From Azolla caroliniana (lineage: Eukaryota > Plantae > Polypodiophyta), in assembly GCA_043228905.1 (NCBI GenBank), contig JBHGNT010000013.1:12710001-12774000 (forward strand): a stretch of DNA of 64,000 nucleotides, written 5' to 3'. Of this stretch, positions 1 to 62,370 are shown one piece after another. The notes under the pieces are model-generated. The model saw only the letters and a list, made by a program, of their open reading frames with translations, did not search any database and had not been told where the DNA came from. Made by a program: the position numbers and the translations under genes. Within the stretch, counting starts at the first letter, position 1. Each line of letters begins with the position of its first letter.

Positions 1-900
1 AGAACTTTTGTGGGGAAAGTCCCTTCATCATCGTCGTCTACCCTCTTCATGTTATCGTCTCCCTCTTCTTCGCATGTGTTAGCTTCGGCCTTCACTTCCT
101 CGCCGCCACCTTCCGTCTCTTGGGTCTCACGTTTGCTTTCCGACGCATCTGCCCAAGTCTCTGGAACAAGTGTGGAAAAAGTCTTGACACGGCCATCCGC
201 CATTGATTCGTCCATAGCCACCTCTGACTCGATGTCATTTTTCGTGGCTATCTCCTCAATCATGTCGGCCTCACACTTTTTATCTCCCTTGATCATGCAA
301 GCTTTGCTCATGCTTGCACCTTCATCACATGATGTTTCAGACACGATGCATGTTTCGAAACATTTGTCCTCGCTTGAAGTGGCATTCACCACCCTTGATT
401 CATTGGTTTCATTCCTCATCATTGTTTCTTTGCAAGACGAGAAGGCGTCTTGTTCCACTCCTTCTCCCGTGGTGTTGTCGTACCGAACTTGGGCCTTCGT
501 ATTGGTCGTATCAATACTCCACCTTTGTTGGGAGGTCTCTTCTTCCTTGATAACCATTTTAATCAGTTTTGGTTCCATTATAAGATTCTCTTTGGCTTCG
601 ACTTGCACCTTTAAATTCTCATATACCTGATTTATGAAGGCCTCTATGTTGAGTACTATCGAACCTTCCCTCTTCAAGCTTTCTCCTTTAGATGGTAGTT
701 TGAAGTTGCTTCCTGTCCTCCTTTCACCATTCCTCATGGGTTGTGTTGTTTTTTATGAGAATCTTGTCTTCCTCTTATCGTGTAGTTGACATATTGTTTC
801 CACTTTCGTCCAATCCTCTGTGAGGCCATTTGCACCATCATCATCCTCAAGTCGGATTCCAATGGCCTTCCTTTCCTTCTGATCGATTAACTTCAATGAA

Positions 901-2064
901 AGGATATATCGTTTCTACATCATCCCCAAAATCCACAAGCCCATTGTTGTAGGACGCCCTATTTGCGCCTACAACAATTATGTTTTCGAAAGAGCCTCTA
1001 AAGGGCTACACCATCTACTACATCCTGTCTTATTGTCTAAAAAACAACACCTCAAAGACTCCTTAATACTTGTTAAGGACCTAGCACACCACACCTTCCC
1101 CAAAACTTGCACGTTGTTTTCTTTTGACATAGTGTGACTATATCCCAGTATACCTACCACGGAAGGTCTATTGGTTTTTAAAAAATCTATTTCACATCAT
1201 TTCCCACCACACAAAACCAAAATCATTATGAGTGTTGCCGAACTTATACTTAGAAACAGTTTTCTCTCCTTTAATAATGCTTTTTGGTTACAAATTAAAG
1301 GCACCGCAATGGGTAGTAATTTTGCCGTTGTTTACGCTTGCTTGCTTCTTTCGCAGCTAGAGAACGACAACCTAACTTTCCAAACACCACAACTACTCTA
1401 CTACAAACGCTACATCGATGATGCTATAGGAGTTTGGGAAGGTTCCCCCGATACACTTCACACCTTCTTACACCAATACGGCGTGCCTCTACAACAACAC
1501 ATCCGTATTGAATCAACAACCTCCCCTAAAGAGATCACCATCCTGGAAGTCGTCTTCTTGAAAGGCCCATACTTTAAAGAATTCGGCATCCTCGACACCG
1601 CATGCCACCAAAAACCTTTCAATGCCTACATGTACCTCCCATGGAAATCCTCGCACCCCATAGCACACAAAAAGGGCTTCATCATGGGAGAACTAAAACG
1701 GTATGCTATCCGGGAGAGCTCGGAAAATGGCTACATGGAACTACGCAAAAATTTCTACGACCGCCTAAGAGCTAGGGGCTACCCGTCGAAGTTCCTACTC
1801 AAGTGTTTTTCGACCGTCCCCTACTCCATACGAAACCAACTACTCTCTAACCAACCCAACAAGAAAAAACCTCCACCCATTGTTTTTAAGTTTCGTTACT
1901 CCCCATGTATCAAAAAACTCCAAATCGGAGCGCTCGTGAGAAACAAACTTAAACCCCTTCTAGGACAACCACAATACAGTTCCCTTACACCCCCTCTCAC
2001 GTGTTGGCTAAATGGTAAAAAACTAAGAAACCACCTAGTACACTCATCCTTTCCCCTCACCTAA
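901..2064 (+). pseudogene. Penelope-like element (PLE) reverse transcriptase, 5'-truncated, with one in-frame stop (TGA 1135-1137)
   Basis: One frame reads FYIIPKIHK..GRPI, LKDS, FDIV*LYPSIP, QIKGTAMGS, YKRYIDD, HQKPFNAYMYLPWKSSHP, RGYP and LRNHLVHS. These are the RT core and thumb motifs typical of PLEs. No GIY-YIG domain follows. Confidence 0.88.
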
Positions 2065-2224
2065 TGTTTTATGTACTCTCACCCCTCTTAACCCCCACCT
2101 AAAGTCTTGTGTACACTCTTTTACCTTCCCTTTGTACACACTTTTGTATGTCCCACATACAAAGGACTCTCCTCCCTCTCCCTATAAAAAGAGCAACCTA
2201 GTAGGCTTAGTTTTCATCATTTGT

Positions 2225-2275
2225 ACATCGGGCACTAAAGAGCCCCCATCGAGGCGAAATGCATTTGTCGATTGT
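2225..2275 (+). ncRNA. Degenerate minimal type I hammerhead ribozyme in the PLE 3' region (pLTR)
   Basis: Stem I acatcgggca(2225-2234)/tgtcgattgt(2266-2275); core CTAAAGA 2235-2241 (consensus CUGAnGA); stem II gcccc-catc-gaggc; GAAA 2256-2259; palindromic mini helix III ATGCAT; UH at 2264-2265. Confidence 0.7.
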
Positions 2276-2329
2276 TACCTTATGATAGTAAAACTTTCTT
2301 TCCTTCTATGTGTTGTTCTTATCTAATTT

Positions 2330-2960
2330 TTTGTCTTAAGTTCTTAAGTACTTATTTAATAAATTTTTATTAAGTACTTGTTTAATCACTTTTTTATCAA
2401 TTTTCTTGTCTTAAGTTTTTAAGTATTTATTTAATCATTTTCTATTAAGTACTTGTTTAATAATCATTTTTATTACGTACTTGTTTAACCCCTTTTTTTA
2501 AAGTACTTGTTCAATCATTTTTTGGTTTAACTTTTTGTTTAAACATTTGTTTAAGTATTCTCCTCTCTTAATCATAATCATTCTCTTCTTAGCCATGACC
2601 CCTTTTCTTTAACCATATCCCTCCCTTCTCTTTTAATCATAACCTTGCTTTAAGTGTTTGCCCAAGTGTTTTCTTATCTAAATATTTGTTTAAACATTCA
2701 TTTAAGTACTTTGTTTTAGCAACCCCTTCCCCCTTAATCATAATCCCTTCTTAACCATAATCATTTTTTAATCTCAATCTCTCTTTTCTATTTTTATTTT
2801 TATTTTTTTATAATAATCTTTCTTTTAAGTGTTTGTTTAAGCGTGTGTTTAAACAACTCCCTTTCATCTAAGCGTGTGGTCCTGTTTTAATAATACTCTA
2901 TATTGGTGTTTTAATAATACTTTATTGGTGTCTAATAACTTAAGTTATCCCAATAATCTT
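2330..2960. repeat. T-rich array of degenerate ttaagtacttgtttaa-like motifs, probably part of the PLE insertion (right edge ~3134)
   Basis: Motif copies near 2345, 2370, 2419, 2446, 2473 and 2499, with further degenerate copies. The array lies between the PLE RT and the point where element A gag resumes. Confidence 0.55.
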
Positions 2961-3418
2961 TAATATGTTCTAAAAACTTTGATTAGGTTTAAATACTTTT
3001 GATATCTTCAACAAGCTACACTCCCCTAACCCCCACCCACGCCCTCACTTTTCTATTCTTCTAAAACTATATCACTACTTATGTTTACACATACAAATAA
3101 GATCTAAACTTGAGTCCACCCCAAACAACCCCCGATGAAGTGCCGCACACTTGATCCGAGAGTTATGCAAAGCAACACTCGAACTCAATGAAAGCATGCA
3201 TGGCACTTTGCTGGGTCTTTAATGATGATACCCATTGGTCAAACTCGTATAGGCTGCATCTCTTCGGGTCTTTGTATCTAGCTTCGTTGATAAAAGCCTC
3301 TCGATCTCTCGCCTTGAGCATGATTTCTATGACGGACACGATGCCTTTCATCAATTCTTCTACTTGAGTTCCGCTTGTCGAAGCCATCTTTGCATTTGAT
3401 ATCCTCCCTACCGCCTCT

Positions 3419-3436
3419 TTTACGTCGGGTTCACCA
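3419..3436 (-). promoter_or_regulatory. Primer binding site complementary to the plant tRNA-Trp 3' end
   Basis: The minus strand reads tggtgaacccgacgtaaa, 8 nt inside the LTR end. Plant tRNA-Trp(CCA) ends ...UUCACGUCGGGUUCACCA (recalled sequence). Confidence 0.8.
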
Positions 3437-3444
3437 CTTAATTA

Positions 3445-5289
3445 TGTCATGAAAATCCGTCACTATGTGCGGATCGCGAGGCGAAACCATCGGGGTTCTG
3501 GACTAGAAGGATTTAGTGCAACACGTACAACACAAGCAAAATTCACATATAAGACGAGTAGATGAGAGAAAACATTTGTTTATTGCATAAGAAAATAGAT
3601 TCTTTTATAATTCAAGAATCTTGTTACAACGGGTCGGAGATGAAAATGAGAGATAAAAATTTTAAAGAAAGGAGCCAACAACCATATAAGGAGTGGTCCA
3701 ATATGAATATGAGAGATTATTCTTGAAAGAAAGGAGCCAATAACCATGTAAGGAGTGGTCTGATATCAATATGAGAGAGATTTCTTCCCCCAAGGAATGG
3801 GAGAGAGAAGAAGAAAGGAAAAGAAAAAAAAACTAAAGGGAAAAAATGGGACATATATTGAGCTCTTTGTTGATCCTCCTTCCCAATGTTACTTTGCATG
3901 TCCACTTTTAGTTGCATGGCCTCTATTTTTAGTTGCATGGCCTCTACTTTTAGTTGCATGCCTTTTACTTTTAGTTCCATGGCCTTGGCTTTTAGTTGCA
4001 TGCAACCGTCCGTATAATTCGGCCAAATGACCCAATCATCCATAAAGTTCAGCCCGTGCGCAATCCGTACGTGCATCGCAACCAAACCGTAGATGCGTCC
4101 GCGCGCAAAAGTCCCGACTACGTAGTGTACACATCCACACCGCCATGCATACGTGCGTACGCCCCAAGCGTGCACACGCGCGTACGCCCGAAGCGTCCAC
4201 ACCACACAGTTTAGCCCAACTCACCTTAACATTTTGTGCTCCACACATTGATAAAATGAATATGTCTGGTTTCCCTTATATATCCTGGGTTCCAATGTTG
4301 TGTTATCTATGTAGGGTATCTCACAATTTTGTCTTTTCTTTTTTTTCTTCAAACTTCACACTCACATAACTTGATACTTGTTTATCTGTTACATGCGTAG
4401 TAAAATACGTTACGAAGCTCTTGAAGACATCTATCTTTCCATATGAATACATTATGCTAATCTTAAATAATTGTTTTACTAGTTTTCATATCGTGTGTGA
4501 AAAAACACACGACACTGACAATCGGACGGAACAAGAACTGGCAACTGGACGACGATCGGAACCGAAACCGAAATCGGACAGCGGCTGAATCGGAACCGGC
4601 GAAGGAACCGGGTGGGAAAGAACTAGAACCAAACAGCAATCAAACCGGGCTAGACGGATCGGGCCGGATGCAACCTGACGGATCATGCGGCGAACTAAAG
4701 TAAACTAAAGTAAAGGTTATGTGAACGCATGCAACTAAAGTCAAACTTTTTGTAAAGTAAAGGTCATGTGGATGCACGCAATTGAACTGAAGATGGAAAC
4801 TGGAGTTCCTTCATGCAAGTGCGAGAAGGGAGGAGAAGAATGGTCCTTAGGGGATCGAAGCATCTTTTGGGGGATAAACCCTAATTTTCCTTGCAAAAGC
4901 TATCGCTCACATAAACCCTAATTTTCGTTACAGAATCTATCTCACAAAAACCGAAACCCTAATAGTTTTCTTTATGGAAGCCATATCTCTCGTTTAACCA
5001 TAAGTTTCCTTACGGAAGCCATATCTCTCAAATAGCCCTAATTTTTTTACTTATGAAAGCCATATCTCATAAATTTGAAACATCGAAGCCATATCTCACA
5101 AACCCTAAACTTTTGTAATCCCAATCGTGGGATTGATTGTAATTTTTCTTCTCCTTTGCTAATGAAATTTATTAAACTTTCTCATTTCTATTAATTCTTA
5201 AAGTATAAATGCACGAATTTGATATCCTCTAGTCAAAGGCCCTGGGGTCCTGTCTCAAGTTCACGTATCCTTGTCGTATTTTCGTGACA
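3445..5289 (-). repeat. LTR of element A (~1845 bp) with internal minisatellites
   Basis: 12-bp imperfect inverted termini; about five ~21-bp ttttagttgcatggcctcta repeats at ~3890-4005; aaaccctaa and aagccatatctc repeats at 4875-5110; conserved family U5 motif at 3478-3505. Confidence 0.75.
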
Positions 5290-9063: not shown

Positions 9064-9649
9064 TGTCGTAGTGTGAATCACACACTACGTGAAATATGTA
9101 AAACACTATATCCGATTTAGAGTACGTATAATAAATAAAAATAAAATATTAAAAATATTTATTACGTGCATAGGGCAGGATTCGAACCCTGTACATCCAA
9201 GTCGACAAACCCCAGCCTTACCACTATACTAGCATACTATGAATTGTAAAGTTATACTAAACTTTATCCCATGTAAATATTCTAGATATGCATGGTACAA
9301 AAAGTTATTCATGCATGCACACTCGAGTTAAAAGAAAAGATGGGATAGAAAGCTAATCATGCACATGCAGTGTGCATGAAAACTAAAGTTAGGAAAAGCA
9401 TGATGCTTGCATGTGATAAACTTAGACTCTTCCAACACTATATAAGGAAGAGAGAAAGATGTATAGGATAGTTGATTTTTTTTGAAGGATTGATTAATAC
9501 AAAATACTCATGGGATTCACGAGTTTCATATCTTCTTCTCGCAATCTCTTCCTAACTAACATTATCTCATATTCTTCTTCCTCCTAGTCCAAAACCCCAG
9601 CGGTTCCCACCCGACTCACGCAAACAATCCGGCGCCGAAAGGCACGACA
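9064..9649 (+). mobile_element. Solo LTR (586 bp) of the tgtcg...cgaca gypsy family with a 4-bp TSD acgt
   Basis: Termini tgtcgt...acgaca, with acgt at 9060-9063 and 9650-9653. Removing it restores the copia peptide MNVLHV. TATA-like tatataagg at ~9439; family U5 motif ctagtccaaaaccccagcgg at ~9585. Confidence 0.88.
9151..9240 (-). promoter_or_regulatory. tRNA-like Pol III A/B-box module inside the solo LTR
   Basis: Minus strand: A box tagtatagtgg (9221-9231), 32-nt spacer, B box ggttcgaatcc (9178-9188), T5 run at 9151-9155. Confidence 0.65.
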
Positions 9650-11724
9650 ACGTTCATCAGCTTCCCCTTTCGTCTGACATGGCTTAAAGGGACTTCTCCG
9701 ACATGCACAATCGGGTGAGGGGTGTCATCTCCAATTTCGACAATCCCCAGTTGTTCCGGCTTCTCCAAAAAAGAGAACCACTCTTCATGGCTCGTCATGT
9801 GGTTGGACGCACCAGAATCAACGTACCATACTACCTCCGATTTTGAAGTAGACTTCTTCATCGAGTTAGCCTTGTGCTTCATCACAAAGGCTGCCCCTTT
9901 ACCAGTTTTCCCGGTTTTGGATCCTTCTGATCCTTCCGCGTAGTGCGAGCTTTGTCGGTCCTCCCGACCAGTTTTGCCAGATCCGGATCTGTCCAAATCG
10001 GCGTGCTTCTTCCAGCACTCGCGTTCCCTGTGGCCCTTTTTGCCATTGTACTAGCATTCTGTGTCGGCCTTTCCTTGCCGGTTCCCGGCGCCGCTTTGAC
10101 TCCCCCTGCTTGTGGAGGGTTCGAAACTGCTGTCGGCACCACTTTTGTGCCTCCGGTCCTGCTCTTGTCAGTCGCCTCCATTGCGTGCCGACCCACCTCT
10201 TCCACCACGTCCATGGGGTTGATCCGTCTCCGTGTACAGCATCCTGTCATCTGATTGAGTGGTCCTTGACCCACTCGCGTGGTTTTCTTCGACCATCAGC
10301 ATCGATTACAAGTCGAAGAAAGACGGTGGTTTCTCCCGGGTGCAGATCGTTCTCCAGGTTGGCTCGTACCTTTGCGCTAGACCACCGAGGCAGGTTTGTA
10401 CCATCTCTTCTTCGTCCACCGTCACATTGATGAACCCGAGTGCGTCGCAAATCTCCTTTATCTTGCTGGTGTAATCTGTAACCGACATGTCTCTTTGCCG
10501 GATGTTGTTCAACTCTTGCCAGAGCTGCAACTTACGGGTTGTGGTACTCGCGGTGAAAATCTTCCTTAGATTTCCCCAAGCCTCCTTCGGTGTCTTTGCA
10601 TCCTTGATGTAGCCGAGCATCTGATCGTGCACACAAGATGCGAGGCAGTACAATACTCGGCTCGCTCCTTGCTCCCATACCGGGAAGTCATTGTGTGCCG
10701 GCTTCGGCGCTACCTCGTTCGTTCCTTCCATGAAGCTCCAATATCCATGCCCCATCAGGTACTGGTGCATCTTGTATAACCAAGATGCATAGTTGCTCCG
10801 GTCGAGCTTCTCTGTTGGACGTGAACTCGCCATTCCTCTCTCCATATCTTCTCTCTGTATGTTGTTACTGGGTTCTAGGGTTCATCTACGGAAGCAAGTG
10901 TCGGCTGCAGAGGTTCTCAACCCTCGCGCTCTGATACCATGTAAATGTAGACGTGCGGAACCGTTAGACAAAACCGGCTCAGCCAGATAGCAACAGAGAA
11001 TAAGATGAAGGTTTAATGGAATAACTTAACGCACAGAGAATACGCGTGGGAGAGACAGAGAAAGAGAGAGCAGAACATAAACTCAATTCAAAAAACTCTA
11101 AAACTCTGTACATACAACGTGCCAAACAGCACTATTTATACAAGTCCATAAAGGACTGACAAAAGTACTGACAAGTACTTCAATATTCCTACGTGTGACT
11201 GACACTAACTACGAGACAATGATTACCTAGTAGTCTAGGCTACTACTAGGCTTCCGGTTACCGCTCTGATCCGGCTACCCAGCTCACCGATCTGGATCCG
11301 GTTGAGCTTGCCACTCAACAATTATGTATGCGGGTGAGTCATTCAAACAAAAGGATCATATGGTTATGATTGAATAATATATGGTACAAGTGCAGGTGTA
11401 GTGATACAACAGCTACAAAAGGATGTAACATTATTTGCAAAGAGAAACAATAGAACCAACAATCCAAATAATCTAACCTCCAAGAAACCATGTTTTTTTA
11501 CAATGCAATATATATGGGAATAGAGGAAAAAAAACATAAGTTAGGGCTTCACTAGAGCAATAAACACGTTGTCGCAGAAATCCAGGAGTATGTGTCGAAA
11601 CGGGGCGGGACCATCGGGGTCTTGGACTAGAGAGAGATGGAGGAAAGATTGAGCTACACCAATACTAGTTACGCCAGCTGACACACCGACCGGAGCGTTT
11701 CCGAATACACACTTGAGGTAACCG

Positions 11725-52430: not shown

Positions 52431-52992
52431 AATGTCCTTGTTGAGCGGGCAAGGTCAACCGGATCCGGATTGGAGAATTGGATAGGTACTTGGATCAGTG
52501 TCTGGAACCTAGAGCCAGACCGGAGAACCGGATCATACTCCGGAATAGTGAGAACCGATAGGCCGTTGGTTGGCGCCTACGGTCCGAGCCTAGTACGTAG
52601 GCGTATTCATTGGAGTTAGTGACAATCGCTTGTATGAGCATTGAAGTACATGTTAGTACTTTTAAGGACTTGTATAAAAAGTGTTATGAAGGACATTTGT
52701 ATGTACAAAGTGTTATTATTTTGAATTTTGTTTTTTATGTTGTTTTGCTCTCTTTGTATCTCCCGCTCTCTGTCTGTGTGATTCAAGCTTCCATTAAACT
52801 TGTGTATACTCTTTCTGTTGCTATCCGGGTGAACTTGTTTGTCAACGCTTCCACATATTAACTTTGACATGGTATCAGAGCACGAGGGTTGAGAACCTCT
52901 ACTGCTACCAAATTGATTCAACGCCAGTCTTAAGCCTCCTAGCTACTATTGTATATTCTCTTAACATAATATATATATTTTGTTATCATCAT

Positions 52993-53034
<42 letters not shown>

Positions 53035-53227
53035 TCGCTCTTTCCTTCTCTCGAGAGTTCTACACTTCCCTTAGCACTAATTCTCATCTTTAGTACTAAT
53101 TCCTTCTCTGTGTTAGTACTGTTCCTGATAGTTTGAACCAATTTTGTGTCTCCGTCCTTCTTTTCCTTTATCTTCTTACTTCTCCCTCCCTTCATACTAA
53201 TCTCTTATTCCTCTTTTCTCTCATATA

Positions 53228-56200
53228 ATGGCCACTGTGAGCGCTCAAGAATATCAATCCATTTTTTCGGAGTTGCAATGCTTGAAAGAGAAGTTTCTTG
53301 CATTGGAACAAGAAAATCAACGACTGTTGGGGGAGCTTCAACAAATCTCCTTAGAAAAGCAGCAAACATAATAACAACATGGGGAACTAGCGTTACCGTG
53401 CAACATCTCGAAGCAACCATAGTAACGATGCAACAACAAGTACCTAGTACGCAAGGGGTTCATAAAGAACCCAAGATCGGCCTTCCCATGAAATTCGATG
53501 GAACACGATCGCAGTTTAGAGGATTCCTTAATCAGGTACGATTAGTCATTCAAATGCATCCTTCTCGATATCCCATGGATGCATCACGAGTGGGTTTAGT
53601 AGGCACGTTGTTAAGTGGCTTAGCTTTGGCATGGTTCACTCCGTTGTTAAAAAAGAAATCTCCTTTACTAAACAATTTTGAAGAGTTTTTAAGTGAGTTT
53701 AAAGCCTGTTTTGGAGATACTGATAGCATAAGGATAACAATCAACAAAATCCGACGATTATGTCAAGGTGACTGTCTAGCCTCTGCATACGCTGCAGATT
53801 TCTGCCTACTCGCCTCGATATCCCCTGGGATGACCAAGCACTTATGGAGCAATTTCGTTATGGTCTACGTAACGATGTCAAGGATTTACTCTTGACCTTC
53901 CCCAAAGAACCAAAGTCATTGAAAGAAGCAATTAGTCGCGTGGTGAGATGCGACTACCGTCTTTTCGAACGACGTTCGGAATGTCAGTTCCAGATGCCAA
54001 GGGCAAGATAAGAGCCCACCTATGCCTCAGTGGTAGCAAAACTTTTTCCAAGGGAGTCATATAATGTGTCTCCAGTGAATACTCCAACTCCGATGGAAAT
54101 TGACACTACACGTCGTTGCGGACCATTATCGGAAGAAGAAAAGCAATGATGCCGAGCAAATCGACTATGTCTTTATTGCGGTGGACTAGGGCATATTGCA
54201 GTGAACTGTCCCCATAGGCCAAGAAGACAAGTGAACCAAATAGTTGCTAGTTCTAATTGTACTAAACCTGAGTCTATTTCAATAGGAATATCTGATAGTC
54301 CAAATAGTACTAATAGCCCAAATCTATCGAACAAATTTGATGTCCTTAGTCAGTTATAAGAAGAGTTAAACGACTAAGTCCAACCAAAATAAGAGTTGTT
54401 TGGTTGGACAACCCTAGATCTGTGCAACCCATTAGTGGTTCCATTCCCTCTAAGCAAGTTAGCAATCTGTTCTTAGCCCAAGTAACCGTTAGTGCTAAAA
54501 GTACCTCTCGAGTACATGTCTCGGCACTCCTAGATTCCGGAGCTAATTCTTGCTTTATGGAAAGGAATTTTGCCCAAGTTCATCAGAAATCCCTAAGAAA
54601 ACTCTTGTGCAACCCATTAGTGGTTCCATTCCCTCTAAGCAAGTTAGCAATCTGTTCTTAGCGCAAGTAACCGTTAGTGCTAAAAGTACCTCTCGAGTAC
54701 ATGTCTTGGCACTCCTAGATTCCGGAGCTAATTCTTGCTTTATGGAAAGGAATTTTGCCCAAGCTCATCAGAAATCCCTAAGAAAACTCTTGTGTCCAAC
54801 CTTTGTAGTAGTCATTGATGGTCGTCCCATTGCTTCCAGAAATATCATAGAAGAGTCAGAGCCCGTTAATATTGTCCTAAATAATTTAGCGTGTGTAGTA
54901 TCCTTTAATATAATTAGTATCCTAGAACATCCCATTGTTTTGGGATTACCATGGTTCGAATTACATAACCCAGACATAGATTGGAAAACAAGAGAAATCC
55001 GGTATCGACAAACCCGAGGATCTACTCATAAGATTGCAACCATTTCGCTACATCAGTTGCGTGAGGAAGGACGCAAGGAAGAAATGTTTCTCTTCGCAAT
55101 ATCAGTAAAACCCTCCAACACCACTAAAGTGGAGTCCACTGTTCAACTTCCAAAGAAGTATCGTCATTATGCCGATGTGTTCGATAAAGTACAAGCCAAT
55201 ACGCTTCCTCACCATCGACCATATGATTGCCCCATCAATTTACAACTGGGAAAAGAGCCACCATGGGGACCGATCTACAATTTGTCACCAACCGAGCTAG
55301 AAGTCCTTCAAGCCTATATAGAGGATGGCAAATGGTTTCATTCGACATTCGAAATCTCCAGCTGACGCACCCATTTTCTTTGTCAAGAAAAAGGATGGAT
55401 CACTTCGTCTCGTCGTAGATTACCGTGGCTTGAATAAGGTCACCATCAGTAATAGGTATACACTTCCCCTTATCTCACGTCTTTTAGAACGGATCAATGG
55501 TGCAAGGTTCTTCACAAAGATCGACTTACGAGGAGCATATAACCTCGTACGGATCCAACCAGGAGATGAATGGAAGACCGCGTTTCGCACTAGATATGGG
55601 CACTTCGAGTATAGGATCATGCCATTCAGCTTCACTAATGCGCCAAGAGTCTTCTAGCACATGACAAATGATATATTTCAAGATCACTTGGATGTTTGTT
55701 TGATCATCTGATCTACTGGTTTATTCGAAGACCCAAGAAGAGCATGATTCTCATGTACTGTTAGTACTAAAACGACATCGAGAACATGGTCTTTATGCAA
55801 AGCTAGAACAATGTAGTTTCGAGTGCAACCAGGTAGAATTTCTGGGCTATGTCATTTCCTTGATCTCCATGGATCTAGCTAAGATCAAAACAGTGGTAGA
55901 GTGGCAGACTCCACGTTCCTTGCGACATGTGCAATACTTTTTAGGCTTTGCCAATTTCTACCGCAAGTTTATACAGGATTACTCAAAGCTTGTTCTACCT
56001 CTCACACAACTTACCAGGAAGGGACAATCGTTTGTTTGGTCTGAAGAAGCAGACATGTCTTTTGAGGGTCTTAAGAAGGCATTTACATCAGCTCCTATTC
56101 TGGCTCATGTTGATCCGGAAAAACCATTCATCATCGAAGTAGACGCGTCGGATTTCGCGTTGGGTAGCATTCTGTCATAGCAAGGCGATGATGAAAAGCT

Positions 56201-57690
56201 CCATCCTGTGGCTTTCCACTCACGCAAGTTTGACACCACCGAAATCAACTATGAAATTCACGATAAGGAGCTATTAGCAATAGTGGACTCTTTTACGCAA
56301 TGGAGGCATTTTCTAGAGGGATCTTCTCATCAAGTTACCGTATTTAGTGATCACAAAAACCTTGCCTACTTTCAGAATGCTCGTGTGTTAAATCAATGTC
56401 AAGCTTGGTGGGCCCAATTCCTCACTCGTTTCAACTTCAAAATTACATATCATCCGCGGAAGCAACATGGGAAGGCAGATGCATTATCACGACGCTCGTA
56501 TCTAGCACCACGTCCTGGCAAGCTAGCTTTCAATAACCAAAAGCATGTAATCCTGGGACTAGCATGACTGCAAGCAACACAGGTCTTCGGAATACCCTTG
56601 GATTCCCACGTTATCGATACCATACGTGAGGACTTGAAGATAGATGCTTTCGCCCAAGCCATTCTAGCACAAATTGATCCCTCTTGAGCATCTTGTTCAC
56701 AGTCGCAACAACCAGGTACAGACTATCGACAATTCGAATGTCATGATGGATTACTATTCTTTAAGAAATTCTTGTATGTTCCAAATGGTTCTTGTTGCCT
56801 TCGAGTAGTCCAAAACTGTCATGACACATATACAATTGGGCATTTTGGTAGTACTAAAACATTAGATTTAGTACAACGACCATTCTGGTGGCCCCATATG
56901 TGACAATTTGTCGAAGATTTTGTTTGGACTTGCGATACATGTTGCAGAGCAAAAATGCCAAGGCTTCATCCATATGGTTTATTAGAACCATTACCAATTC
57001 CAAGCAAGCCATGACAATCCATTGCTCTAGATTTTATCACAGATCTTCTAGTCTCTAAGGGATTCGATGCGATCTTAACAATAGTAGATTGATATACGAA
57101 GATGGCCCATTTTCTGCCATGTACTAAGGAAATCTCCAGTGAGGAAACCGCCGAAACTGTCATGCATGAAGTATGTTGACATCATGGCCTTCCCGATAGT
57201 ATCATCAATGACTGTGGACCCTAGTTCGTCTCGAAATTATGGAAGCACATCTTTAAAATGCTCAAGGTCACTTGTAATCTCTCCTCCGTCTTCCACCCAC
57301 AAACATGCGGCCAAGCAGAATGAACAAATCAAACGCTGGAGCAATATCTTCGGTGCTTTCTAAGCTAACATCAAGATGACTAGGCAAATATTCTCCACTT
57401 CGCCGAATTTGCGTATAATAACTCTGTCCACTCATCGACAAAGGTTACACCATTTTATGCTTATACGGGTTGTCACCCCTGGTGGTGTGTATTTGAAACA
57501 CCATAGTTACCCACAAATCCTTGCGGTGGATCGTTTGGAGCGGTTATGCAAGATACAAGCGGATTTATCTACTCATCTACAACAAGCTCAACAAACACAC
57601 AAGGTTTACGCGGATCGTCATCGGCTTCCATCCAGTTTTAACATTGGAGATTGGGTATGGCTACTTCGACGACACATCAAGACTACTCGC
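53228..57690 (+). pseudogene. Ty3/gypsy gag-pol (Tcn1/Tf-like), truncated in the integrase C-terminus
   Basis: gag LPMKFDGTRSQFRGFL, PMEID, CLYCGGLGHIAVNC; protease ALLDSGANSCF; [34 protein letters not shown]; RNase [21 protein letters not shown]; integrase HHCC/core and DWVWL. Many stops. Confidence 0.92.
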
Positions 57691-60600
57691 TCGTCTAATC
57701 ACATGATGAGCCACGAAGAGTGGTTCTCATATCTGGAAAAACCGAAGCAACCAGGAGTTGTCGAAACCAGAGATAACACTCCTCACTCGACCGTGAATGT
57801 CGAAGAAGTTCCCTTGAGTGACGTAGGACAAAAAGGGAAGCTTATGAATGTGCTTCACGTCTCGACAATCACAAAGAACTTGGTGTTGGTCGGTCAGATC
57901 ATTGACCAAGGGATGCAGGTGTAGTTTATGCACCTCGGGTGCTTCATTGAGGAAGAGGGCTAGATCATCGTGCGAGGGCACCGAGGTAGGAGGATGTTTA
58001 TCCTTAACACCAACGACGTCGGCACCACTCTATTCGCAAAAGGACATAAGGTCGAATCGGATATCGACATGTGGCACAAGCGGATCGATCACGTCAACAA
58101 TCAGAGACCTCAAGACCTGCAATCGAAACATGTTGTTTTCGGATTGTCAAAATTCAGTGGCCGGAAGGCCCAAATTTGTGAAACCTGCCAGCTTGGGAAG
58201 CAACACCGGCTTCCGTTCCCCACCGAAAGAAACCATAGTCGTAACAAGCTCGACTTGATACATTTTGATGTATGGGGACCGACACAGAACGTTAGCCTTG
58301 GCGGGAGCCGATATTTCGTCTCCTTCATCGATGACTACAACCGGCACACATGGGTCTACCTCATAGAGAAGAAAAGCAAAGTCTTCGATTGTATCCGGAA
58401 CTTGCGAAGTCTTGTCGAACGGGAAACAGAGCGGAAGGTCAAGTGCCTACGGTCGTATGGCAGGAAAGAATACTTTTCCGTCCAATTCAACAGTTATTTG
58501 CAACAGAAGGGAATTCAATGAGAATTCAGTTGTAGATACATACCAGAACAAAATGGTGTGGCCGAAAGGAAAAACTGGTCGATTGTGGAGGCGGCTTAGG
58601 CAATGTTGGAAGAGAAGAGCATGCCAGAGTTCTATTGGGCTGAAGCGGTCTGGACGGCCATCTACATACAAAACCGGCTCGGGGAAAAGGTGTCAGCACA
58701 AAGCTATATTGTGGGTGGAAGACGAATTTAAGGCACCTTAGGATATTCGGTAGCATCGCATATGTGCATGTGCCGGATGAGAAATAGAGAAAGTTGGACC
58801 CTAAGTCGGAGAAGTGCATTTTGGTCGGTTACTCACATGAGCATAAGGGATATAAGTGCTACAACCCCTAGACTAAGCAAGTACAAGTAAGCGGAAGATG
58901 TTGAATTTGATGAGTCGGCATCATGGTACTCTTTACCGAATCCGACTTCGACCCGATTCCAGCAGATGAGGCTAGTGAGCCGGAAACAATTCGGATAGAA
59001 GAAGAAGAAGAAGACTTTGGTACTCTAGATGAGAGTTCCATCTCATTTCATCTGAGTGGGCCGAATGAATGACTGAGTCAGAACAACCAGTCCAATGATG
59101 AGCTGGCGAGTAGCGAAGACTCAATTGTGCCTTCCCTGCGCAAGGAAACGAGGAGACGGTTCATGCGCAAAGAAAGGGAAGAAGAAGATGTCGGAGTGCA
59201 ACACCGGCAAAGAAGAGTCAGATCAGAGCGAATTTGATTCCGTACTAAACGAAGACGGACCTTCAAAGACGAAGTCCGAGTCGGCCAAGAGGGCCTTGCA
59301 ATTAACGAACAAAAAGTTATGCCGATTGACCCACCAGAAGAACCTCGTAAAAAGGTATGGATATAATGAGTACATGGCGCATCACTATGCGTACATGACG
59401 AAAGTGGCGGAAGTGCGTGAGCCGGAGAGCTACGCAAAAGCGGCAAGGGATGCACATTGGTGTGCCACTATGGAGGAAGAGATGCGAGCACTCGATGCAA
59501 ACAAGATGGGACCTGGTTGACCCTCCCTGACATTGCAAACCAATCGGTTGCAAGTGGGTGTACAAGGTAAAGTATAATGCTGACGGTTCGGTCAATCGGT
59601 ACAAGGACCAGTTAGTGGCCAAGGGGTACGCGCAGACCCTCGGATTTGACTACGACGAGACCTTTGCTCCGGTAGCGAAGATGACGACGGTTCATGTGGT
59701 GCTGGCAGTTGTTGCGACAAGGGGGTGATATCTTCACCAAATGGACGTGAAGAATGTGTTTCTTCAAGGTGACCTTGAAGAACAAGTCTACATGATCCAA
59801 CCCCCCGGTTTTCAATCAGAGATGAACAAGTCGGCAGTGTGTTGACTCAAAAAGTCCCTTTACGGCATGAAGCAAGCCCCCCGTGCTTGGAATTTGAAGA
59901 TCACGCGGCAGTTGTGTAGGATGGGGTTCACGGCCTTGAAGTCGGACTCTTCACATCCGGAAAGGTTCGGACGGTTCGGTCTGTATCTTGCTATATGTGG
60001 ACGATCTAGTCATCACCAGACATGGACTTGCTAAAATCGGCCAAGTGAAGTCGCAATTGTCGGATGCATTCGAAATGAAGGACCTAGGGGACCTTCATTA
60101 CTTCCTCGGGATCGAAGTGATCCATACCCGGTCGACATATTGTTGTCTTAGAGACATTACGTGTTGAATATGCTGTTCAAGTTCGGCATGATGGATTACC
60201 GACCAATCTCCACACCCTTGGACTGGAACCTGAAGCTTCGTTCTGACTCTGGATCGGCCCGCAACAAGAAACGGTTTCGACAAATTGTCGGAAGCCTTAT
60301 TTATTTAACGATCACCCAACCCAACATTAGCGATCTAGTCGACACGATTAGTCAGTTTATGCAAAAGCCAACCGTGGAGCACCTTCAGTGCGTGCACTGA
60401 ATACTGAGGTATGTTAGCGGCACTAAGGACCGAGGATTGTTATACCGACACAGTATAACCAAACAACTAGTCGGATATACGGATCCCAACTGGGCCGGAG
60501 ATGCGTCGGATCGACGGTCCACTTCAGGATTCATGTTCTCTCTAGGTAGCGTGGTTATTGTGTGGAGAAGCAAAAAGCAGTCGACTGTGGCTCTTTCGAG

Positions 60601-61120
60601 CACTGAGGCTGAGTATCGGGAACCGAACAACTAGTCGGATATACGGATCCCAACTGGGCCGGAGATGCGTCGGATCGACGGTCCACTTCAGGATTCATGT
60701 TCTCTCTAGGTAGCGTGGCTATTGTGTGGAGAAGCAAAAAGCAGTCGACTGTGGCTCTTTCGAGCACTGAGGCTGAGTATCGGGGCGCTACCGTTGCCAC
60801 ATGTGAAGCCATTTGGCTTCGGCGGTTGCTACAAGACCTCTGGATTGAAGTACCGACTCCGGTCCCGATCTACTGCAACAACATGAGCAACATGCAGCTG
60901 GCCAAGAACAATGTGTTCCATGCTCGGATGAAGCACATCGAAGTGCATTATCACTTTGTGTGTGAGCGGGTCCTCGATGGTGAAGTCGAGCTCCGGTATG
61001 TTCGGACATATTGACAGGTTGTCCACATCTTCACCAAGGCCCTTGGAACCGACAAGTTGCAACATTTTTCGGAGATGTTTGGTCTTCAACATCTTGGCAT
61101 GCCGCACTCGAGGGGGAGAA
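57691..61120 (+). pseudogene. Ty1/copia pol (protease C-part, integrase, RT, RNase H), same family as element B
   Basis: [57 protein letters not shown] and [10 protein letters not shown], collinear with element B. Confidence 0.93.
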
Positions 61121-62370
61121 CTTGTACTGGTACAGGGAGAACTGGAAAAGAAACCAGAAAACCAGGCAAAGGCACCAGACAAGCAGTCGGAGAGAAGGAA
61201 ACAACTGAAGCAGGGGGAGACAAAAGAATAAGGAAGCCGAGTTGACTGAAAAAGTGGTCACATATGATAAAGTCGGAACAAGCGATGACGACGAGAGAGT
61301 CAAGAAGGACAGAGCCGACCGGAACGAGAAGGTCAAGACGCGGACATGGTCTGACATGGTGAAGGGCCTGAAGGTTGAAGATGAATTGGAGACAACCAAT
61401 TCGGATAAGAGCTGGAATGCATCGAAGGCAGCCAATTCTAAAGAGGAGTTCGATTCGGAGGAGCCGAATCAACAAAAGGCCAAACAGACGAGGAGGTAGC
61501 GAAAGTCGACACCGACACAGAGGGACCGATGAGTCGAGAAGCATCAAAGTCGCAACAACGACGGAGCAGACAAGCCGATCGAGAAGGTCGAGGTGCGGGG
61601 GACTGGAAGGGTTGTGGGAAGTGGAATTGGATGGGTCAAGAAGCGCGAGCAAGGCAGGAAGATGCCAGGAGGAGCCGGAGGAAAGGACCGGTGGACACAC
61701 ATAGTGATCTGACCTCAAGTTGAGCTTGAGGGGGAGTGTTGAGTGGGCAAGCTCAACCGGATCTAGATGGGCTGAATAAGCCAGAGCCGGATCGGTATCC
61801 GGAACGGAGAACTAGATAGGTACCCGGATCGGTGTTCGGAACCTAGAGCCGGACCGGAGAACCGGATCGCACCCCGGAATAGTGAGAACCGGTAGGCCGT
61901 TGGAGCCTACAGTCTGAGCCTAGTACGTAGGCATATTCCTTTGAGTTAGTGGCAGTCGCTCGTATGAGCATTGAAGTACATGTTAGTATTTCTATCAGTC
62001 CTTTTAAGGACTTGTATAAAAAGTGTTATGTAGGACATTTGTATGTATAGAGTGTTATTATTTTGAATTTAGTTTTTTATGTTGTTTTGCTCTCTCTGTC
62101 TCTCCCGCTCTCTATCTGTGTGATTCAAGCTTCCATTAAACTGTGTGTACTCTTTCTGTTGCTATCCGGGTGAACCGGTTTGTCAAAGCTTCCGCATATT
62201 AACTTTGACAGTCTTCACATTGTATACCATCCTTAGCCCTTCTTTGGCTCCATGGTGGAATAGTTTTTCTAGGCCTTCATTATACGAGAGGCTATGTCAA
62301 CATAGAATACTACCCGAGATCACTTTGGCTCCTATAATTACATGAAGACACTAGCTGAGGCATCTACAAA

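Follow-up and report, generated by a model that had tools for sequence, protein, structure and literature searches.

A fern copia retrotransposon whose leader and gag are replaced by a gypsy segment beginning at the predicted 5′ end of a gypsy RNA

How did the pol genes of two retrotransposon superfamilies come to lie within one pair of long terminal repeats (LTRs)? The question is raised by an element at 52439-62210 of a 64,000-nt stretch of Azolla caroliniana DNA (GenBank assembly GCA_043228905.1, contig JBHGNT010000013.1, positions 12,710,001 to 12,774,000, forward strand). This stretch is referred to as the window, and all coordinates of the locus are given in window positions. The LTRs of the element are of copia type and enclose a block of gypsy sequence followed by copia pol. 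The gypsy block replaces copia sequence, and its start coincides with the predicted 5′ end of a gypsy RNA. Probably, though by no means certainly, the element is the fossil trace of an LTR-mediated retroposition that had the genomic RNA of a second retrotransposon as its captured template. The features of the element are given below; copia B is a related copia element used as reference, and L numbers designate gypsy relatives.

52434-52438, forward strand: left target-site duplication (TSD), GTCCT, agreeing with 62211-62215 at four of five positions
52439-52869, forward strand: copia 5′ LTR, TGTTGAG...TTTGACA, 71-74% identical to the copia B LTR
52870-52900, forward strand: copia primer-binding site (PBS; 52870-52881, initiator tRNA-Met, TGGTATCAGAGC) and a 19-nt stub of copia leader
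52901-52906, forward strand: filler at the 5′ junction, ACTGCT, matching copia B at 3/6 positions and L001 at 0/6
52907-53130, forward strand: gypsy repeat and unique 5′ regions (R-U5), the downstream part of an LTR without its unique 3′ region (U3), from homology to L001 1654-1813 and to L004 from 768 onward
53133-53144, forward strand: predicted gypsy self-priming PBS (TTGAACCAATTT), 2 nt past the LTR end and complementary to 52910-52921 at 11/12 positions
53228-54374, forward strand: gypsy gag (capsid and zinc knuckle), decayed, from Pfam and tblastn with the L010 gag
54404-57690, forward strand: gypsy pol, with protease (PR), reverse transcriptase (RT), RNase H (RH) and integrase (INT), terminating within the SH3-like domain, from Pfam and comparison with L010
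57684-57696, forward strand: 3′ junction, nominally 57690/57691, where the parents share CGTCC
57691-61721, forward strand: copia pol (PR remnant, INT, RT, RNase H) and 3′ untranslated part, beginning one codon past the protease DSG, from Pfam
61722-61736, forward strand: copia polypurine tract (PPT), purine-rich, directly read
61737-62210, forward strand: copia 3′ LTR, with its start at 61737, from direct-repeat search, BLAST and MAFFT
62211-62215, forward strand: right TSD, GTCTT, directly read

Anatomy of the composite element

Direct-repeat and BLAST searches identified a single pair of copia LTRs (52439-52869 and 61737-62210), and direct reading showed that both begin with TGTTGAG and end with TTTGACA. 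BLAST aligned 52463-52869 with 61797-62210 at 87.6% identity (with gaps), and a global MAFFT alignment gave 91.1% identity over 425 sites (29 transitions, 9 transversions), with a Kimura two-parameter (K2P) distance of 0.097. Copia B (about 11320-5323, minus strand, 77% identity in the internal region) served as the reference for a complete copia element. When aligned with its minus strand, the PBS was identical and the following 19 nt agreed at 18/19 positions, and homology on the 5′ side ended near 52900. The order PR-INT-RT-RH, the initiator tRNA-Met PBS and the 5-bp TSD are all present and fit Ty1/copia. A preliminary description of the locus had proposed that related copia LTRs, this PBS, a PPT and a near-perfect TSD enclose one unit, and had assigned the PBS and the next 19 nt to copia B; repeat search, BLAST, alignment and direct reading confirmed these points. 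The outer LTR pair and its TSD indicate a single integration. The copia element is old and dead.

Downstream of the gypsy block, 57691-61721 was collinear with copia B 9809-5323 (minus strand). Pfam searches of stop-to-stop pieces from 57691 returned Pol_BBD (the copia protease barrel, profile positions 7-80 of 81), gag_pre-integrs, rve, SH3_retrovirus and RVT_2. Between the two collinear copia flanks, 1098 bp of copia B (10908-9811, comprising the leader, gag and the start of the protease) had no counterpart, and it follows that copia sequence was replaced and not interrupted. No copia gag was found anywhere in the window by BLAST or Pfam, as had been described previously.

Pfam analysis of the region from 53137 to about 57690 identified DUF4939/Ty3_capsid/Retrotrans_gag, zf-CCHC, aspartyl protease, RVT_1, RT_RNaseH and Integrase_H2C2. 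Gypsy relatives were fetched from public contigs through protein matches. One of these, L010 (ENA ERZ27227293 k119_137590, 220-5039), is near-intact, with a gag of 290 aa and an uninterrupted pol of 1209 aa which contains RT, RNase H, integrase, SH3_Tf2-1 and chromodomain; its lineage is, or recently was, active in a plant contributing to that sample. Compared with L010, the gypsy pol of the window ends at about residue 1062-1067, so that the integrase is short of about 145 C-terminal residues, and the remaining SH3-like domain, chromodomain, PPT and 3′ LTR are absent. The RT-RH-INT order of chromoviruses is seen in the window, and the C-terminal chromodomain which is cut off here is present in relatives L001, L005, L010 and P0065/P0071.

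Neither a second gypsy LTR nor a chromodomain remnant was found anywhere in the window, and BLAST found no other copy of the gypsy part within it. The inner LTR pair and inner TSD expected of a nested insertion were not found in the element. The earlier statement that paired gypsy LTRs and an inner TSD are lacking was thus borne out, with only one R-U5 in the window. The switch to a gypsy leader followed by gag-PR-RT-RH-INT, also described previously, stood as regards gene content, but 52907-53130 is more than a leader and represents the R-U5 of an LTR.

The sequence at the 3′ junction is ..ACTCGTCCATG.. in the gypsy relatives and ..GGTGCGTCCAAC.. in copia B. CGTCC is common to both parents, yet the join is not a clean crossover. 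An open reading frame (ORF) at 57364-57921 spans the junction (..HIKTTR|SSNHMMSHEEWF..). At this point the gypsy relatives run on ..HIKTTRPCEKLDY.. into the SH3-like domain and chromodomain, and the copia relatives read ..VWYVDSGASNHM... Copia B has ..VDSGASNHM.. where the window has ..HIKTTRSSNHM..; from this comparison the catalytic DSG of the copia protease is missing, having been lost at the junction, and copia homology resumes at the codon following it. The ORF and copia B together bore out the in-frame switch back to copia at 57690/57691, just after the DSG site, that had been noted before. We gave no weight to the in-frame join, as one such join in three is expected by chance and a later change is possible.

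Apart from the two junctions, the gypsy and copia halves were both collinear with their relatives and contained no large deletion. Both have decayed, the gypsy half with ~16 stops and 6 frameshifts in ~1360 codons and the copia half with ~11 stops and 8 frameshifts in ~1150 codons. Over 608 residues, gypsy RT-RH-INT at 55710-57527 aligned to L010 pol without a change of frame despite 12 in-frame stops, which indicates that this region decayed mainly by substitutions and not by insertions or deletions. Two head-to-tail duplications of similar size were also observed, one of 185 bp in the gypsy protease (54421-54790) and one of 164 bp in the copia RNase H region (60457-60784). The copies within each are 97-99% identical, and both duplications are therefore much younger than the element (LTR K2P about 0.10). 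Copia B holds an insertion of ~590 bp (9064-9650) just downstream of the protease region, which breaks its collinearity with the hybrid.

Start of the gypsy segment and predicted self-priming

The 5′ limit of the gypsy segment was placed by comparison with relatives that retain complete LTRs. L001 (JGI contig, 85% identity) runs from integrase through chromodomain, pol stop and PPT into an LTR of 441 bp (1373-1813), with TGTCATGAA as its first bases and TTCATGACA as its last. Window 56748-57689 corresponded to L001 1-944, and the window from 52907 onward corresponded to L001 from 1654, within its LTR. L004 (84% identity) was collinear with window 52907-54603, and its homology likewise began exactly at 52907 (L004 768). 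In L009, which has a genuine 5′ LTR with flanking DNA and the same first bases (TGTCATGAA), about 289 bp of U3 precede the equivalent of 52907. Genomic gypsy copies thus have about 280 bp of U3 upstream of this point, and the window has no U3.

In a four-way alignment the window enters at 52907, at the start of a strongly conserved block. A conserved TATA box was seen in L001, L004 and L005, and L009 has the same TATA box and block; the distance from the TATA box to the equivalent of 52907 was 29 nt in all four. The possibility that 52907 is the start of the gypsy LTR, and hence a true integration junction, was considered and rejected, as L001, L005 and L009 have ~280 bp of U3 and a TATA box upstream and the LTR begins TGTCATGAA. 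Whether the ACTGCT filler ahead of 52907 is copia-derived, non-templated or diverged is uncertain. Within U5 a microsatellite of (CT)n or (CT)n(CA)n was present (window 52987-53036, L001 ~1745-1800, L004 ~860-915), with variable length and motif.

No TGG-type (tRNA) PBS was found in the gypsy leader between R and the gag ATG at 53228, and for this reason a self-priming reading was examined. Elements of the Tf1 type prime themselves, their PBS being complementary to the beginning of their mRNA (PMC4600332), and self-priming has been predicted for the non-seed plant Tcn1 clade (PMC6317226). A script was used to count the pairing, MAFFT having misplaced the PBS block of the window and L004. The window self-primer block (52910-52921) starts 3 nt downstream of the gypsy start at 52907, and the duplex pairs at 11/12 positions with one compensated C-to-T / G-to-A pair. 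Perfect duplexes of 12 bp were found in L001 (1658-1669/1816-1827) and L009 (2246-2257/2406-2417), the latter with three positions altered on both sides relative to L001. L005 has a perfect duplex of 11 bp (1226-1236/1386-1396), also with matched changes, and L004 pairs at 11/12 positions (10 Watson-Crick and one G-T). The duplex lengths of L001, L005 and L009 were matched in at most 1/2000 shuffles. The distance from the TATA box to the duplex was 32-34 nt in all four relatives.

TATA spacing and self-primer pairing are two independent features, and both put the predicted 5′ end of the gypsy RNA no more than about 3 nt from 52907. The start of the cargo therefore coincides with this predicted terminus. 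A foreign segment without U3 that begins at a predicted transcript 5′ end, breaks off at an arbitrary internal point on its other side and lies between intact carrier LTRs has the form expected of an RNA-derived template-switch retrocopy. The preliminary description had regarded a gypsy LTR end at 52901-52970 as a sign of nested decay or misassembly. LTR sequence is indeed present there, but it is an R-U5 without U3, which looks RNA-derived and is unlike the product of a random deletion.

By its sequence features the cargo family is a predicted Tf1-type self-priming chromovirus. The likeness to Tf1/Sushi-Tcn1 lies in a PBS that follows the LTR by 2 nt and is complementary to the first bases of R, and in the SH3_Tf2-1 and chromodomain found in the pol of relatives. 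The self-priming Tcn1 clade was listed by Neumann et al. 2019 for moss and club-moss only.

Origin of the composite

The explanation we favour is RNA capture by template switching during reverse transcription. A copia virus-like particle would have packaged the RNA of a self-priming, Tf1/Tcn1-like gypsy chromovirus beside copia RNA. Minus-strand synthesis would have started at the 3′ end of copia RNA and proceeded to just beyond the protease DSG codon, where a first switch may have carried the enzyme onto gypsy RNA within the integrase SH3-like domain. The gypsy RNA would then have been copied up to its capped 5′ end, and the enzyme, running off the template, would have been forced into a second switch, back onto copia RNA 19-25 nt downstream of the PBS. 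The resulting chimeric cDNA, with normal copia LTR ends, could have been integrated once by the copia integrase to give the 5-bp TSD. Such a sequence of events would replace about 1.1 kb of copia (leader, gag and protease start) with 4.8 kb of gypsy (R-U5-PBS-gag-PR-RT-RH-INT without the C-terminus). Both the packaging of gypsy RNA and the order of the switches are what we infer from this anatomy.

Two routes to a hybrid had been proposed previously, cross-superfamily template switching and "LTR capture". The coincidence of the gypsy start with the predicted gypsy RNA 5′ end favours template switching, and LTR capture is not needed. RNA capture is further supported by the replacement of copia sequence, by the single integration evident from the LTR pair and TSD, and by the absence of U3. 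The short similarity at the 3′ junction, where the join is not a clean crossover, and the 6 unassigned nt at the 5′ junction may also fit it, as both kinds of junction have been described for such chimeras (PMC5131818). Weaker support comes from the collinearity of the two halves without other large deletion and from their similar decay.

Several points weigh against RNA capture. The transcription start is a prediction from TATA spacing and self-primer pairing, and the packaging of gypsy RNA in a copia particle is likewise deduced. Only one copy is known, and protein searches with the junction and DNA searches of JGI contigs were empty, the host genome being outside their coverage. Large plant genomes commonly hold nested insertions that later suffered deletions, and the L004 gypsy LTR is truncated inside U3 beside a copia RT fragment. 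As to L004 itself (ENA ERZ1034375 NODE_1694), positions 1-770 hold a copia-like RT fragment (..EPECYEEAM..) which adjoins a gypsy 5′ LTR without its first ~180 bp. The position of this copia-gypsy join is unlike that in the window, and it could be the product of nesting and deletion or a short-read assembly chimera.

Ordinary nesting and decay is unlikely in our judgement, albeit with a weight that has to be reckoned with. By this account a complete gypsy element inserted in the gag region of a resident copia element, and two deletions followed, one removing the copia leader and gag through the end of the gypsy U3 and the other removing the gypsy integrase tail, chromodomain, PPT and 3′ LTR together with the remaining copia gag as far as the protease DSG. 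Such insertions and illegitimate-recombination deletions are frequent in plants (for background see PMC1950507, PMC13570524), and L004 provides an existing example of a truncated gypsy LTR abutting copia. Also in favour of nesting, the deletions would total only about 2.3 kb, and the element is old (LTR K2P 0.097). Nesting would however require a chance coincidence, to about 3 nt, of the 5′ breakpoint with the predicted RNA start, for which the expectation is roughly 1-2% even inside a 441-bp LTR. No remnant of U3, chromodomain, 3′ LTR, inner TSD or copia gag was found, and about 8.9 kb of retained sequence shows no further large deletion. Three events would be needed where RNA capture needs one aberrant reverse transcription.

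The 5′ breakpoint does not tell against a different account, in which a break or deletion in a resident copia element was repaired after integration with an aberrant gypsy cDNA whose synthesis began inside the integrase region and ran to the 5′ terminus of the RNA, or equivalently by RNA-templated repair. Yeast provides a precedent, as retrotransposon cDNA is known to be captured there at chromosome breaks, and the RNA 5′-end start, the copia replacement and the boundary would be accounted for equally well. We nevertheless give post-integration capture only a slim chance. It calls for an odd cDNA, since normal gypsy cDNA has full LTRs, and for a 1.1-kb deletion at the same site, and the similar decay of the two halves gives no sign of a later arrival. 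With one copy it is inseparable from the particle model. The fusion of a copia copy and a gypsy copy during assembly, which a repeat-rich genome would allow, is very improbable. It would have to create two separate junctions in the same orientation, neither of them in sequence common to both families, in a unit bounded by a matched LTR pair and TSD.

Further copies of the junctions were sought in protein collections and JGI metagenome contigs. A protein search with the 186-aa junction ORF gave 108 matches, each to copia protease or gypsy SH3/chromodomain alone, and a 60-aa query centred on the junction gave 4 matches, none of them across it. An exact look-up of the junction ORF returned no record, and two junction-specific DNA patterns each gave 0 matches in JGI metagenome contigs. 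No second copy of either junction was thus found in these collections or in the window; the host genome lies outside the collections, and these blanks are weak. Support was lacking for the earlier suggestion of a working hybrid, with gypsy Gag and protease combined with a copia integrase matching the LTR ends: one copy is known, stops and frameshifts interrupt both halves, the gypsy integrase is truncated, and copia gag and the DSG are both lost. When it inserted, the hybrid was probably already dead, or non-autonomous at best. There is a small residual probability, which we would put as slight, that it is the founder or a member of a family which retrotransposed as a unit bounded by copia LTRs and packaged via the gypsy leader and Gag. 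Were this the case, the element would represent a cross-superfamily recombinant lineage and direct evidence of RNA exchange between copia and gypsy particles in ferns.

Relation to known recombinant elements

LTR-mediated retroposition by a double template switch inside the particle has been described for yeast Ty1 pseudogenes, maize Bs1, and Drosophila and vertebrate cases (Tan et al. 2016, PMC5131818), and the mechanism is already established in yeast, plants and animals. Replacement of carrier sequence is a stated hallmark of the resulting retrocopies; most of their junctions show microsimilarity, and some have a short filler made de novo (PMC5131818). The hybrid shares with these cases an RNA-derived foreign segment, on the reading favoured here, which replaces part of the internal region between the LTRs, and integration in one piece with a TSD; its junctions, with short parental similarity on the 3′ side and 6 unassigned nt on the 5′ side, may be of the same kinds. 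It differs in its cargo, which is ~4.8 kb of retrotransposon RNA from another superfamily and not a host mRNA, so that the product has two pol sets. Our literature search found no report of a captured near full-length retrotransposon RNA from another superfamily.

Complex or recombinant LTR retrotransposons formed when reverse transcription switches between RNAs packaged together (Sabot and Schulman 2007, PMC1950507), and the hybrid non-autonomous families of sugar beet (PMC13570524), have in common with the hybrid an origin in reverse transcription, outer LTRs made in a single replication cycle and TSDs on either side. Those recombinants join the same or close families at a homologous R or LTR and keep an internal LTR, whereas the partners here are unrelated, the joins are non-homologous and no full internal LTR is present. 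Nested LTR retrotransposons resemble the hybrid in that one element lies inside another; in contrast to them, it has no inner LTR pair or TSD, sequence of the host element is missing, and the inner element starts from its predicted RNA 5′ end.

As a single, old and dead copy, the element has its value as an example and a search image and not as a new system. Self-primer pairing offers a means, from sequence only, of locating transcript 5′ ends in an abundant fern element family. If RNA capture is the correct explanation, the element would be a rare physical record that the genomic RNA of an LTR retrotransposon can be packaged and copied in the particle of one from a different superfamily. Such packaging across superfamilies is a step needed for the modular evolution of retroelements, and one that is seldom caught.

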